From contig JAWQFM010000029.1 of assembly GCA_033442325.1 (NCBI GenBank), positions 806,848 through 870,847 on the forward strand: a stretch of 64,000 bases of DNA. Reading direction: 5' to 3'. Below, one piece after another: positions 37,311 to 43,300 of this stretch. Under the pieces are notes generated by a model. It did not search any database. It saw nothing but the letters and a program-made list of their open reading frames with translations, and was not told where the DNA came from. Numbering within the stretch: position 1 is the first letter of the stretch; each line of letters begins with the position of its first letter. The DNA comes from Salpingoeca rosetta. Its lineage: Eukaryota; Protista; Choanoflagellata. The translations under genes and the position numbers were made by a program.

Positions 37311-40300
37311 TCAGTAGTATGTTTCGCGGAAGGCAAATCCAGTCGGGTACTTGCGAATGAACCACTTGCGAATCTCATCAAACATGAGGATTGAGACGGA
37401 GAAGGGGAGCGGAGTGAGCCAGTGGCGGAACAGCAGCGGGCGCATGTTCAGTGCGACGTCGGTGCCCGGTGCATACGACAGCACAGCAGCGAGCGCCGTC
37501 TCAAAAAAGAGCGCAAACGTCAGCACGCCGTTCCTGTTGGGGGGTGGAGGGTGGGGGAGAAGAGGGACATGGTGGGTGAGGTAGTGCGAGGAAAAATGGG
37601 AGAGAGAATGTGTGTGCAACACGTGTGCATATGCATGTATGTACGCATGCATTTATCTATTTATGCAGGCGGTTGTATTTCGCTAATTGCGCCACAACCG
37701 CAACATCCACTCTCGCTCACCACCACCACCACCATCACTGCATGTGCTCACCGCATGCCCTGCTGCATGAGGGAGAGACGACGCGTCTTGCAGATGACCA
37801 GATCGGTCCATTGCGCAATGACGATGGAGACGAAGAACGCCGTCTGGCACGTCGCCTCGAGGTCCTTGCGCTGGTCATACGTCTGCAGGCGGCCATGGTG
37901 GCGGTGGTGGTGATGATGATGATGAAGTGTTGCAGTGGTGGGGTGGTGGTGGACGAGGGAATTGTCGTGTGGTTGAGTGAACTGATGGGTTTGGTGATTA
38001 GACAAAACGGCAGCCAGGCAGCTTCAAGCGCAAGGCCGCACAACACCACTGCACCACCCGCATGTTCCCGCCTCTTCCCGCTCACCCATTGCTGGCCGTA
38101 GCTGTCTGTGACTTCCTCGAAGTTGCGGTCGTCCCAGTCGTCACGAAGACCAAACACGTCGTTCATCAAGAAGCCATATTCGCTCATCTGCGTGCAGTAT
38201 GTGAAGAAGCCAGCTGCCGTCTGGACTGCGCCAATGAGGAGGTACGTCATGCACAGCAGCCGGATGTTGACGAGGCGGTCCTTGGTTGGGTTGCGCGGTG
38301 GTCGCATCATGATGTCGGACTCCGGGCCCTCGTACGCCAGCGAAATGGCGGGCACCTGGGCCGTGTAAACGCGTTGTGTGGGTGGGTGGGGGGGGGGAGG
38401 GAGGGAGGGAGGATTTGGAGTCGAGTTGAGGGGATAGGTATGGGATGAGTGAGAGAAATGGAAAGCGATAGCGCGACAAGGCAAACAGAACGGAACAAAG
38501 GCGACACGGCTGAAGCAGGCACACACACACACACGCACGCACACACACACACACACACAGACACACAGACAGACACACACACACACACACAGACACACAG
38601 ACAGACAGACACACACACACACACGCGCGCATACGCACCATATCTGTTCCGAGATCGATGCAAAGAATGGTGACGGTGCCGAGGGGAAGCGGGGCGGAAG
38701 CGAGAACGAAGAAGAGGAACGGGGTCAACTCAGGCAGTTTGGATGTGAGGGTGTAGGCAATGGACTTCTTAAGGTTGTCGAAGATGAGTCGCCCTTCCTC
38801 CACGCCAGTCACAATGGACGCAAAGTTGTCGTCAAGGAGAATCATGTCTGCTGCCTGCTTGGACACATCGGAGCCAGCGATACCCATGGCAACACCAATG
38901 TCAGCCTTCTTCAGCGCAGGGGAGTCGTTCACACCATCGCCCGTCACAGCAACAATCTGGCCAGCACGCTGGCAGCCTGAGGTGGTGTTGATGTGGGATG
39001 GGTGAAGTTCGGAAGGGAAGGGGAGGAGAATGTGAGGAGGAGGGCAATGGGAGCGAGTACGCGTTGGCATAGGCGTTGTATGATGCGACGTGAGGCAGAC
39101 ACAAGGGCATAATGAACAGGGAATTGTTACCCATCAACGTGCACACACGCGCACAGACACAGACACACACACACCGCAGCAGCAGCAGGGGTATCGCACC
39201 TTCGACGATGATGAGTTTCTGCTGTGGAGATGTACGGGCAAACACAATCTCAGTGTGGTTGGCGAGCACGTGGTCAAGGTCCTCTGCCGACATGTCTGCC
39301 AGCGTGGAGCCCTGAAGTCAAAGACACAATCGTGCATTGAGCGCCGGTGTGCATGTGTGAACGACAACAGAGGGGAAGAGACATGCATGCAACAAGGGCA
39401 CTGCGAAGGCACGTGTCATGAATAAAGAACACAGTGAAGGATTGAAGCCACTTAAAATAAAACAAAATGGACACCTTGACGACGATGGCACCAGGTTCCG
39501 ACAGGTCAATGGACGAAGCGTCCACCCCGCGCTCCTCTGCAAGATCATCGATAGTTTTCTCCGTGTAGATGATGCCGACTTGCTTCGCAATCGCCTGCGC
39601 TGTCACGGGGTGGTCGCCCGTCACCATGATGACCTGTGTGTGCGTGTGCGTGCGTGTGAGTGTGTGTGTATGTGTGTATGTGTTGTGAGTGGGAAAAGCG
39701 AGCGTGAGAAAATCCAAGCCAGCTTGGTGCACACGAAGGCCAGACAGCCACATGCACACGCACGCACGCACACACACACACACACACATGTTCAGTGGCT
39801 CACCTTGATACCGGCAGAGCGGCACTTTGCGACGGCGTTGGGGACGGCGGGGCGAGGGGGATCAATCATGGCAAAGAGACCGCAGTACACGAGACCTTCG
39901 AGTGGGAAGTTGGCGGGCTGGGTCTCAAACTGGTAACCAGAAGGGTACTGGTCGGCGGGGAGGCGGAGGCAGGCAAAGCCAAGCACACGCTCGCCACGCT
40001 TGCCGAGGGCGGTGTTGTTGTCCTCAAACTTCTTGCGATCCGCCTCGGTCATGTCGACAATCTCGCCGTTGCGGTAGAGATGCGAACAGCGGTTGATGAT
40101 GCGCTCGGGGGCACCCTGCAATCGATGATGATGATGATGATGATGATGATGATGATGATGATGATGATGATGATGATGATGATGATGATGATGATGGTCG
40201 TGAGGATGGTGGTGATGATAGTGAGCGACGTCGTGTTCGATGTCACGGACAGAAAAGCAGGCAAGAATGATACAATGCGCGCAGTTGTACATACAAACAC

Positions 40301-43300
40301 AGACAGAGACACACACGCCACATGTACACACATAGAGCACAGCAAAATAGTCGCACCTTCATGACGAGGAGGTAGCGCGGGTCGTCGTCTGGTGTCTCGT
40401 GCACAGAGACCTGGTACTTGTTCTTCGAGTTGAAGGGAATGTCAGCCACATTTGGGTACTTGGAGCGCTCGCCAACAACGAGCGAATCCTTGACGGACTT
40501 TGTCTCTGTCAGCACGCGTGCAGCGTTACGCTCCGTGTACTTGAAGATGGCGGACTCAGACGCATCGCCAATTGTGTCACGCCGGAGGATGGGCACGTCA
40601 CTGAAGTCCTCGCCGGGGTTTGGCGGGCGGAAGTTGGCCTGCGGTTAAGGTGGTGGTGGTGGTGGTCGTGGTGATCATCGGGGGTATCACATAACATGCA
40701 CAAGTTACATCCACAAACTCACACAAGCGAACGGACAAACACACACACACACACACACACACACACACACACACACACACACACACACACACACACAGCC
40801 CATACCTTGTTGCAAAGGACGGCGACGCGAAAGAGGGCGAGGTAGGAGTCGTTGATGTCAAACTGCATCTTCTTCTCCACCTTCGGGTCCGTGTTGATCT
40901 CTCGAATCTCTTGATCAAAGCAAATGTGTGCAACCGTCATGTTGTTCTGCGTCAGGGTGCCGGTCTTGTCGGAGCAGATGGTGGAGGTGGAGCCAAGCGT
41001 CTCCACAGCCTCCAGGTTCTTCACGAGGCAGTTCTTCGTCGCCATCTTCTTTGCCGTCAGCGTCAGGCACACCGTCACCGTGGCGAGCAGACCCTCTGGT
41101 CAAGTCATTTCGGGAGAGGGGATGTGTGTGTGTGTGTGTGTGTGTGGTTATGTTTAACACGAACGCGTGAGCTGAGGCAAAGCGAGAGTAACAACCATGT
41201 ACGGCCACACTCACTCACACCCACCCCCCCCACACACACAATACAACACACGCACACCCCTCCAGCACCCCCCCCCCAACATACAGACAAACCAAAGTGC
41301 AAGGGAGATGCTTACCTGGCACCTGAGCGACAATGATACCGATGAGGAAGATGACGGCGTCGAGCCAGAAGTAGCCGATGGCGAGCGAAATGGCAAAGAA
41401 GATCGCACCAACTGCACACAATGACGATGCAAGAGGGGAGGGGGGAAGAGGTTGTGTCAGTACACAAATGAACGTAGGGATGCGCGTATGAATGTAGGTA
41501 TGAATGTATGGATGGGGTGTTTCTGTAAATGAGAGTGTGGTCGGTGTTGTGGTAGCGCGAGGTTTGCTGTCGTATGTGTCCATGAACGTGTTGCAGGAAA
41601 CCACACCAATCATGGCGACGATGGTGATGATCTTGGTGAAGTGATGAATCTCCCGTGCAATTGGGGTTTCTGCAAGTGTTGTTCGACACGAAACGAGCGG
41701 GTGAGTCAAGGGGGATACGGCAATGGCAAGTAGTCATGGAGTTGCTGGGCGGATCAGTGGCCGTCTTGAAGCACACATGAGCTGACAGAGACAAATGCGA
41801 AAGCACAAGGCAGCCAAACAGACACACAGGCAGTCGGACACATACACACAGGCAGTCATGCACACGCACACATAGATACACACGCAGACAGACAGGCACA
41901 CACCCACCCATACACAGAAACAGACACAGGGGCACACCCCCCACCCCCCCCCCCACACACACCTCCAGCATCGACGCCGCTTGCGAGGCCGGCGATGCGG
42001 CCGAGGACGGTGTTATCTCCGCATCGAATCACAATGCCAACACCAGACCCCTCCACGGCGTTGGTGGAGTAGAAGGCGATGTTCTGTGTCTCCAGTGGGT
42101 TGGCGTCTGTGCACTCTTTGCTGCGCTTCTGTGGCTCGGCCTCACCGGTGAGAGAGGAGTTGTCGACCTGTGGGGTGATGTTGCATGCAGGCACAACGCG
42201 TCAGCGCAAAGAGGTTGAGGAGGAGTAAGAACAAGCAGCAATGCAGAACACGGGATTGCGGACGAGTTTGGAAGCGCCATAATTCATAGGCCACATCCAC
42301 GCACACGGATACACACACACACACACACACACACACACATGCTCACCTTGAGTCCCTGTGTCTCAATGAGGCGGAGGTCTGCAGGAATGCGATCGCCAGA
42401 TTTGATCTCGACGACGTCACCGCGCACCAGCTCAACCGCGTCGACAATGCGGACCTTTCCTTCACGCCTGACCTTGCTCTTCTGCGGCTGCAGCTTTGCA
42501 AACCCTTTCATCACGTTGGCAGCGCGGCCTTCTTGGAAGTAGGAGAAGCAGCCCGTGATCAGGACGACGACGGCAAGCACGATGCCAAGGTACAGGTTGT
42601 CTGCCGGGGCCTTTTCGCCAGGCTTGGCCTGCGACACCTGGATACCATATGCGATGAAGCACAGGATGGCGCCGATCCACAACAGCGTGGCAAACCCGCC
42701 GGTCATCTGGCGAAGGAACTTGACCCACTCTGGCGTCGTTGGCGGCGGGGTGAGGGCGTTGGGTCCCTCGTCAGCGAGCGTCTGTGCTGCGCGGGTCTCC
42801 GTCAGGCCCTGCTCCAGATCTTTCAAGTTGAAGCGCGCCATGAGTTCCTCCACGGGCACCTGGTGCTCGTCCATTACCAGTTCCTTCTTCAACTCGTTGA
42901 GGTCTGGCTTCTTTCCCTTCTTTCCCTGCGACTTGCTCTCCTCTGCATTGCATGCAAGCAAGAAGGCAAGGTGAGAAGGGGAATAGGAAAGCAGAGGGGG
43001 CGGGGGGCAATGGGGTGCATGTTTTTGTTAGAGGTGAACGTGGTGGTGACATGAGAGCTTGCAAACCCCCAGAAGGGTGATCAAATCGAACCCAGCGACA
43101 GCAGGTGTTCACATCATGTACACACACGCACACACGCACACGCACACGCACACACACACACACACACACACACACACACACACACACACACACACACAAA
43201 ACGCACCGGGTGGGGTCGCAGCGGCGGCTGGTTTCGGGGAGGTGGGCTTCGTCGCTGAGAAGGTGGTGGCGGCGACTCCCGACGACTTGAGACCGCCATT

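Follow-up and report, generated by a model that had tools for sequence, protein, structure and literature searches.

Why does a sodium pump gene of a choanoflagellate carry a lysine where the transported cations are normally held? The 3Na:2K ratio of the sodium pump has long been regarded as fixed. Asn776 in transmembrane helix 5 (TM5; residues are numbered as in mature pig α1 unless marked as own) is normally a ligand of both K+ ions and of one Na+, and the Asn in TM4 is its hydrogen-bond partner. The window analysed here, 64,000 nucleotides of the Salpingoeca rosetta genome, contains an intact 14-exon gene for a P2C Na+/K+-ATPase α subunit on the minus strand (43299-37311; 1055 residues predicted), in which both asparagines are replaced. 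In 2023, work on the α2KK isoform of the brine shrimp showed that a built-in lysine can lower the pump ratio (PMC10756188). The window gene, hereafter also paralog A, is an independently evolved member of this known class of Na+ pumps with a lysine in the ion site, and it has an unreported glutamine partner.

Two substitutions in the cation site

The codon AAA at 38738-38740 (minus strand) places Lys at pig N776 (own Lys815), and the codon CAG at 41323-41325 (minus strand) places Gln at pig N324 (own Gln348), in the context IGIIVAQVP|E. A GT-AG intron splits the following E327 codon G|AG, between the end of exon 4 at 41316 and the start of exon 5 at 41095, and the motif IVAQVPEG is therefore present only in the spliced message. 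The residue equivalences were taken from ungapped phmmer alignments to PDB chains, among which the index of 3wgu_A equals the mature pig α1 numbering. Query residues 1-112 align to 698-809 of this chain, with Lys at 776, and query residues 1-31 align to 296-326, with Gln at 324. In the Artemia α2KK chain 8k1l_A, the same two residues align to 758 and 308, both of which are Lys in that isoform. Codon reading and these alignments thus confirm the first-pass annotation of this DNA, which had read Lys and Gln from the two codons and had matched their positions to the two lysines of the Artemia isoform.

The other ligands are canonical: E327, Y771, T772, S775, E779, D804, T807, D808, Q923, D926, E954 and the terminal Tyr-Tyr. 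The annotation's further statement that the remaining ligands, site III and the C-terminal YY are intact agrees with both the alignments and the codons. Beside the lysine, two neighbouring residues are changed, I777L and I780L (own Leu819). Among residues conserved in at least 97% of 161 aligned P2C sequences, N324Q is the sole departure of the window protein. Relative to canonical α1 (pig 3wgu, shark 2zxe), the identity over the exon spanning the hinge, TM5 and TM6 is about 91%, and the motifs DKTGT, TGDHP, GDGVND, SYGQ and YY are identical, as are all the other ligands; the differences are N324Q, N776K, I777L, I780L and A925T. One label is not supported. The lysine had been assigned to site I, while in the ion-free E2 structure of α2KK determined by cryo-electron microscopy the Lys amine points toward site II, and the site that it takes during transport is left open (PMC10756188), so that the “site I” label is not established.

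The likeness to the α2KK isoform of Artemia franciscana (PDB 8k1l; Artigas et al. 2023, PMC10756188) goes beyond the TM5 lysine (Lys758 there). Both proteins are P2C α subunits with a non-Asn TM4 partner (residue 308 there) and an intact site III, both have a Thr adjoining D926 (QWTDL), and both coexist with canonical isoforms carrying Asn at the two positions. Moreover, among solved structures, 8k1l matches TM8-TM10 of the window gene best. The TM4 residue is Lys in α2KK and Gln here; in the strict sense, therefore, the window gene does not encode a “KK” pump. The two also differ in origin, the window gene belonging to a non-animal paralog clade, and in setting: α2KK works in an epithelium, whereas S. 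rosetta is unicellular and directly exposed to its medium, and the likeness drawn here is one of sequence.

Paralogs, origin and recurrence of the lysine

How did a choanoflagellate acquire this lysine? We searched the genome assembly (55.4 Mb in 68 contigs; the window is G000:C29:806848-870847) with the TIGR01106 profile and then read the loci, which revealed three further P2C α paralogs. Paralog B (contig C26, ~28.5-35.8 kb; loci L013 and L017) has IVANVPEG with SSKLPE, that is, N324 with K776. Paralog C (C14, ~705.8-711 kb) has IVANVPEG with TSNIPE, and paralog D (C21, ~376.5-382 kb), a more divergent gene, likewise has the canonical pair. One genome therefore holds two N/N pumps, one N/K pump and one Q/K pump. 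The codons AAA-CTG...TTG of the window gene recur at the paralog B locus. In paralog B, about 27 residues of the N domain cannot be aligned to the window gene.

A tree of 36 sequences, rooted on a divergent paralog and supported by the Shimodaira-Hasegawa-like approximate likelihood ratio test (SH-aLRT), places these genes. Paralogs A and B pair at 97 and are joined by paralog C at 100, and the trio is sister to the animal pumps at 98; paralog D and an amoebozoan branch lie outside. Because the lysine copies nest in their own paralog clade, sister to the animal pumps, the lysines of A and B are independent of the animal cases, and Lys776 of the window gene arose separately from those of Artemia, Daphnia, fish and rotifers. 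The independent evolution proposed in the first-pass annotation is thus borne out by the trees.

That annotation had also raised the possibility that SKLPE is the widespread ancestral state of the protist pumps. This view is rejected, as pumps of amoebozoan, red-algal, green-algal and other lineages (Vermistella, Rhodosorus, Bathycoccus-like, Anaeramoeba) carry SNIPE with VANVPEG; the lysine is derived, not ancestral.

To what extent has the same substitution recurred? Our survey covered about 160 P2C pumps and combined an exhaustive search with the TM5 exon, a degenerate DNA pattern (S-K-x-P-E ... DLGTD) and fragment searches. Lys776 was found in 10 of the 148 aligned top representatives of the TM5-exon search, including a bdelloid rotifer and several metagenomic protist pumps; the degenerate pattern yielded 14 more Lys776 pumps in metagenome contigs, and the fragment searches added others. 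On the 36-sequence tree, Lys776 needs nine changes, at least eight of which are forced by well-supported branches.

Two further positions follow the lysine. N324 is kept in all 150 long Asn776 sequences and in 6 of the 13 Lys776 sequences with a readable TM4, the other seven having Q, T, S, K, I, Y or W (Fisher 2e-9, uncorrected for relatedness). This rule is consistent with the published behaviour of residues 333 and 785, which share a hydrogen bond in the Na+ state and show energetic coupling (PMC10756188). An animal-like Lys776 contig beyond the 13 has Leu at 324. At position 780, one helical turn below 776, 143 of the 150 Asn776 pumps have Ile, whereas no Lys776 pump does: Leu, Met or Val stands there in all 10 origin groups and in every fragment, the residue of Artemia α2KK itself not being readable in the structure alignments obtained over TM5. 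The loss of Ile780 may make room for the lysine chain. In addition, Thr925, next to D926, is common to the window gene, Artemia α2KK, the rotifer and two freshwater animal-like Lys pumps.

Several single cases deserve mention. In the metagenome contigs L024, L033, L050 and L023, Lys776 is accompanied by Tyr, Trp, Leu or Ile at 324, Tyr being the residue found in the gastric H/K-ATPase. The bdelloid rotifer Didymodactylos carnosus (P0152, P0151, P0011) encodes a genuine KK pump (VAKVPEG and SSKIPEL), with Val instead of Asp at 926 (QWTVL); in the portions of PMC10756188 covered here, no KK carriers besides Artemia and Daphnia are named. In the Rhodosorus marinus cluster, formed at 90% identity, the red-alga-like pumps P0278 and P0076 read SSKIPEL and SSNIPEL, respectively, and the Asn form already has Leu780.

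The Q/K pair of the window gene has a counterpart. A TM4 search returned the fragment P0440 with IIVAQVPEG. Its contig, L044 (Logan SRR14727189_19863; gene at 263-5061), belongs to another, AT-rich organism (36% GC); TM5 of this gene reads TSKFPEV, and several of its intron positions are shared with the window gene. Trees place L044 within the clade of A, B and C, with support of 100/100 from the cytoplasmic and 94/92 from the membrane columns; they do not order it relative to these three. It has also lost two acidic ligands, D808N and D926N, so that it is not simply the same pump. The Q/K pair would be either an old paralog retained in two species or a repeated solution. Since it recurs in a second organism, whether by orthology or by convergence, the pairing of Gln324 with Lys776 is argued to be functional.

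Single-lysine pumps are also described in animals. Freshwater-acclimated fish have α1a-type isoforms with a single lysine, and in these fish, as in Daphnia with its KK pump, the TM5 lysine occurs in one paralog of several (PMC10756188). Paralog B has the same single-lysine pattern as the fish isoforms, which are compared here through their description in that paper. The animal isoforms are tied to Na+ uptake from dilute water, whereas the setting of S. rosetta is possibly marine.

Among the 50% representatives of the protein collection, the window gene has no close full-length relative, the best being Vermistella at 52.7% identity, and a search with P0009 as the query returned animal pumps only and no choanoflagellate orthologs. 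In the literature searched, no paper deals with a Lys-type pump of choanoflagellates or any other protist; PMC9609216 lists choanoflagellate α subunits with no mention of the lysine. The second K776 paralog and the two canonical paralogs, like the co-varying I780L and the mosaic make-up of the gene described below, lie outside the first-pass account.

Gene structure and mosaic composition

The exon model was built from the open segments of the three minus-strand frames, which were joined at GT-AG sites. A first model of 13 exons, from 42961 to 37311, gave a stop-free P-type ATPase ending in ...RETYY, and its 5′ end was refined later; the full model has 13 GT-AG introns, no stops and no frameshifts. 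The first coding exon is inferred at 43207..43299 (minus strand), with ATG at 43299-43297, 31 codons and the donor GTGCGT. Its phase is compatible with the acceptor CAGAG| at 42941, before 42940, and paralog C shares the start context CAATGGCG and has a similarly short first exon.

The following exons, all on the minus strand, are numbered from 1. Exon 1 (42347..42940, GT-AG model) encodes the N-terminus, TM1-TM2 and the start of the A domain and matches TIGR01106 positions 2-186 with 237 bits. Exon 2 (41963..42167, GT-AG model) continues the A domain. Exon 3 (41607..41669) encodes TM3, its GT-AG borders and phase giving a continuous alignment with pig α1, and exon 4 (41316..41411) encodes TM4 to VP and the first base of the E327 codon, including the Gln codon. 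Exon 5 (40806..41095) supplies the remainder of that codon, the end of TM4 and the phosphorylation motif DKTGT (40956-40970). Exon 6 (40357..40638) encodes the N domain and exon 7 (39804..40115) the N and P domains, both being segments that resemble paralog C. The P domain continues through exon 8 (39475..39633), with TGDHP, and exon 9 (39200..39311).

Exon 10 (38639..38976) contains the GDGVND hinge, TM5 and TM6, with DLGTD at 38642-38656. Besides the lysine codon, it holds CTG at 38735-38737 (L777), GAG at 38729-38731 (E779) and TTG at 38726-38728 (L780). Exon 11 (38086..38355; TIGR01106 positions 791-880) covers the TM6-TM7 loop and TM7 with the β-assembly motif SYGQ (DSYGQQW). Exon 12 (37752..37882) encodes TM8 and the site III residues Q923 (37811-37813) and D926 (37802-37804), with Thr925 at 37805-37807. 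Exon 13 (37311..37533) encodes TM9-TM10, E954 (37500-37502), the C-terminal YY (37314-37319) and the stop TGA (37311-37313). No mutually exclusive or alternative TM4 or TM5 exons were found within the window. Many of the introns between 37600 and 43200 (for example 38400-38630 and 40680-40800) have long (GT)n/(CA)n tracts, as do the introns of the paralogs.

The family assignment is consistent with this structure. For six exon pieces, the best family is NCBIfam TIGR01106 (P2C, Na,K/H,K α), and they match it in profile order; their scores sum to 739 bits with exons 2-4 and 8-10 excluded, the curated full-length cut-off being 946 bits, which the complete protein would very probably exceed. Exon 10 matches Na,K-ATPase α1 chains with E=1e-61 and 208 bits. 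The P-type catalytic motifs DKTGT, TGDHP and GDGVND are all present. In addition to SYGQ in the TM7-TM8 loop, the genome has one β-subunit-like gene, a putative partner, with a single PF00287 match above the cut-off (G000:C15:479966-480112, 29.4 bits). The A-domain motif TGES reads TGEA in the window gene (Ala codon 42138-42140); paralogs B, C and D have TGES, as do 149 of 157 relatives, the other eight having another fourth residue.

The exons of the window gene differ in their affinities. Derived residues common to A and B number 14 and are concentrated in exons 3-4 and 10-11; those common to A and C number 12 and are concentrated in exons 1-2 and 6-8, while B and C share only 4. Consistently, a tree of the cytoplasmic regions groups A with C at 88 (93/96 in a careful run), whereas a tree of the membrane regions groups A with B at 99 (94/99 after removal of the trait columns). 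In the membrane tree, the branch of C is short (0.06) and those of A and B are long (0.20 and 0.25). The synonymous divergence (dS) over exons 6-7 is 0.38 between A and C and 1.07 between A and B, and the intron dividing the Glu327 codon is found in A and B and is absent from C and D. The window gene is thus a mosaic, with a membrane core like that of the K paralog B and a cytoplasmic head like that of the N/N paralog C. The simplest reading would be an exchange between paralogs that joined a Lys-type membrane core to a C-like head; the synonymous signal of TM5-TM6 is noisy over its short stretch and does not settle the direction of the exchange.

About 15 kb from paralog B lies a divergent P2C-like ATPase gene (G000:C26:50222-53263, minus strand; L016:2938-6825), which is intronless and encodes 1296 residues. 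It scores 750 bits on TIGR01106, under the 946-bit cut-off, and its ion site is rewritten: VPQG (E327Q), LTHLMPE (S775H, N776L) and DLGTE (D808E). P0149 and P0105, both database representatives, have similar THxxPE motifs.

Transport stoichiometry of the predicted pump

How might such a pump work? We propose that the ε-amino group of the tethered Lys815 would act as a permanent cation within the cavity shared by sites I and II. Each cycle would then occlude one ion less of either kind, Na+ and K+, giving 2Na+:1K+, and Gln348 and Leu819 would serve as second-shell adjustments that position and accommodate the lysine. Since site III is intact, the pump would stay electrogenic. The energy cost of each cycle would be about one third lower, and steeper Na+ gradients or more negative voltages could therefore be sustained. 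Reduced 2Na:1K stoichiometry is plausible by analogy with α2KK, whose Lys758 lies in the ion cavity and whose N333K/N785K mimic moves 1.06 Rb+ per net charge, compared with 2.11 in the wild type, i.e. 2Na:1K (PMC10756188). We consider the chance about even that the product is a 2Na:1K electrogenic pump in which Gln348 and Leu819 tune the lysine.

Several points weigh against this proposal. Transport of 2Na:1K was measured solely in the double-lysine N333K/N785K form, and the single N785K substitution in Xenopus α1 lowered the K+ affinity about 20-fold, which the TM4 lysine restored (PMC10756188); Gln324 may not do what Lys308 does in α2KK. S. rosetta has retained two canonical N/N pumps and so can evidently live with 3:2 transport. 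The 5′ coding exon is an inferred part of the gene model. Two other lines favour the proposal, with reservations. In seawater, a naked cell would spend roughly 457-550 meV on each 3:2 cycle and 299-375 meV on each 2:1 cycle, if internal Na+ is 10-20 mM and the other ion concentrations and the voltage are as assumed; one ATP is quoted at 500-600 meV (PMC10756188). The window gene is also probably expressed: sequencing runs guessed to be RNA contain 43-54% of its words over a region of which exons make up 57%, which is the share that spliced mRNA would give, the RNA label being a guess only.

The strongest competitor is that the lysine alters affinities and kinetics and not the ion count: it would swing out during occlusion, and the product would be a low-affinity reserve isoform that still exchanges 3Na+:2K+. 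The single N785K mutant of Xenopus α1 does still pump, with its Na+ and K+ affinities reduced and its stoichiometry unmeasured (PMC10756188), the window gene preserves every acidic ligand and site III, and Gln at 324 is a conservative change. However, the N776 oxygen serves both K+ sites and one Na+ site, which a lysine cannot provide. The α2KK structure has its Lys inside the cavity, and the Hill coefficients of the single K785 mutant fall to ~1.1-1.3 (PMC10756188). Moreover, in the Lys lineages Ile780 is strictly lost and N324 is released, which suggests a rebuilt site and not a variant that is simply tolerated. We regard unchanged 3:2 transport as unlikely, while giving it more weight than the alternatives that follow.

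A change of counter-ion or mode, to an H+/K+-type or a K+-independent Na+ (Na+/H+) ATPase, possibly electroneutral, seems improbable. The gastric and non-gastric H+/K+-ATPases (PDB 5ylu, 7x20) share the P2C fold and use a TM5 lysine as a tethered cation that blocks one site, and position 324 is also non-Asn in the gastric enzyme (Tyr340; PMC10756188). Among protist Lys776 pumps, P0118, P0138, P0145, L023 and L037 have lost D926 or E779, and these losses, together with D808N and D926N in L044, indicate that Lys776 can accompany deeper changes of specificity. The lysine of the H/K pumps, however, lies one residue earlier (TKNIPE; PMC10756188 and two representatives with this motif), and they are without the site III set Q923, D926, Y771 and E954, all of which the window gene keeps together with Ser775 and the C-terminal YY, according to the 3wgu_A alignments and the codons. 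Lys785 retains cytosolic Na+ selectivity, whereas Lys784 confers proton selectivity (PMC10756188). Against exon 10, the H/K chains score ~25 bits below the Na,K pumps, and exons 12-13 match α2KK best among the solved structures. The intact site III thus speaks for predicted Na+ transport and against an H/K-like mode.

An artefact is scarcely credible, whether the two codons were misassembled or misread or the paralog has fallen out of use: the exon open-reading-frame queries of the protein collection, which recovered the second Q324 gene, did return no identical frame from another assembly, yet the frame is open through 14 exons with canonical splice sites, and 16 runs from 9 studies contain 83-93% of the sampled 31-mers of the whole window gene. 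Sequencing error at the two codons is unlikely because Asn to Gln requires two base changes (AAY to CAG), because the lysine comes with L777 and L780, and because the same codons stand at the paralog B locus, to which an independent metagenome contig (L030, FUWD013138550.1) is 98.6% identical over 1255 bp, introns included. The ratio of nonsynonymous to synonymous divergence (dN/dS) between the window gene and its paralogs is 0.14-0.21, which indicates purifying selection. With this ratio and with N324Q as the only departure from the most conserved residues, a pseudogene is rejected as well, and the window gene is one under constraint with a specific alteration, as opposed to a copy in decay.

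The proposed 2Na:1K pump would have a possible use. Its energy saving may be a reason for a marine protist to keep a Lys pump, on the assumed figures given above; the advantage under fluctuating salinity that the first-pass annotation had inferred finds no support in the present data. Should transport prove to be 3:2, what remains is an isoform whose affinities are altered. On a wider scale, we suggest tentatively, and with less confidence than for the pump itself, that TM5 Asn to Lys is a general, repeated route to a changed ion count, with at least 8-10 origins in animals, a choanoflagellate-like lineage and green and red algal relatives. In this route, Ile780 would be lost and N324 freed or retuned, and the Gln324/Lys776 pair would recur in two organisms from the lineage nearest to animals. 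S. rosetta would then have canonical and Lys pumps together, assembled in part by membrane-core exchange between paralogs.

The survey is the more useful product: the many origins of the lysine, the rules at 324 and 780 and the recurrent Gln partner yield structure-function predictions for positions 324, 776 and 780. The key lysine substitution has here arisen outside animals, in a genome that retains ordinary pumps. If the proposal is right, an organism with both canonical and Lys pumps would offer a unicellular system for testing the evolution of pump stoichiometry. Genome editing exists for Salpingoeca rosetta (PMC7314544), which would make the physiological role of a reduced-stoichiometry pump testable in a free-living cell.

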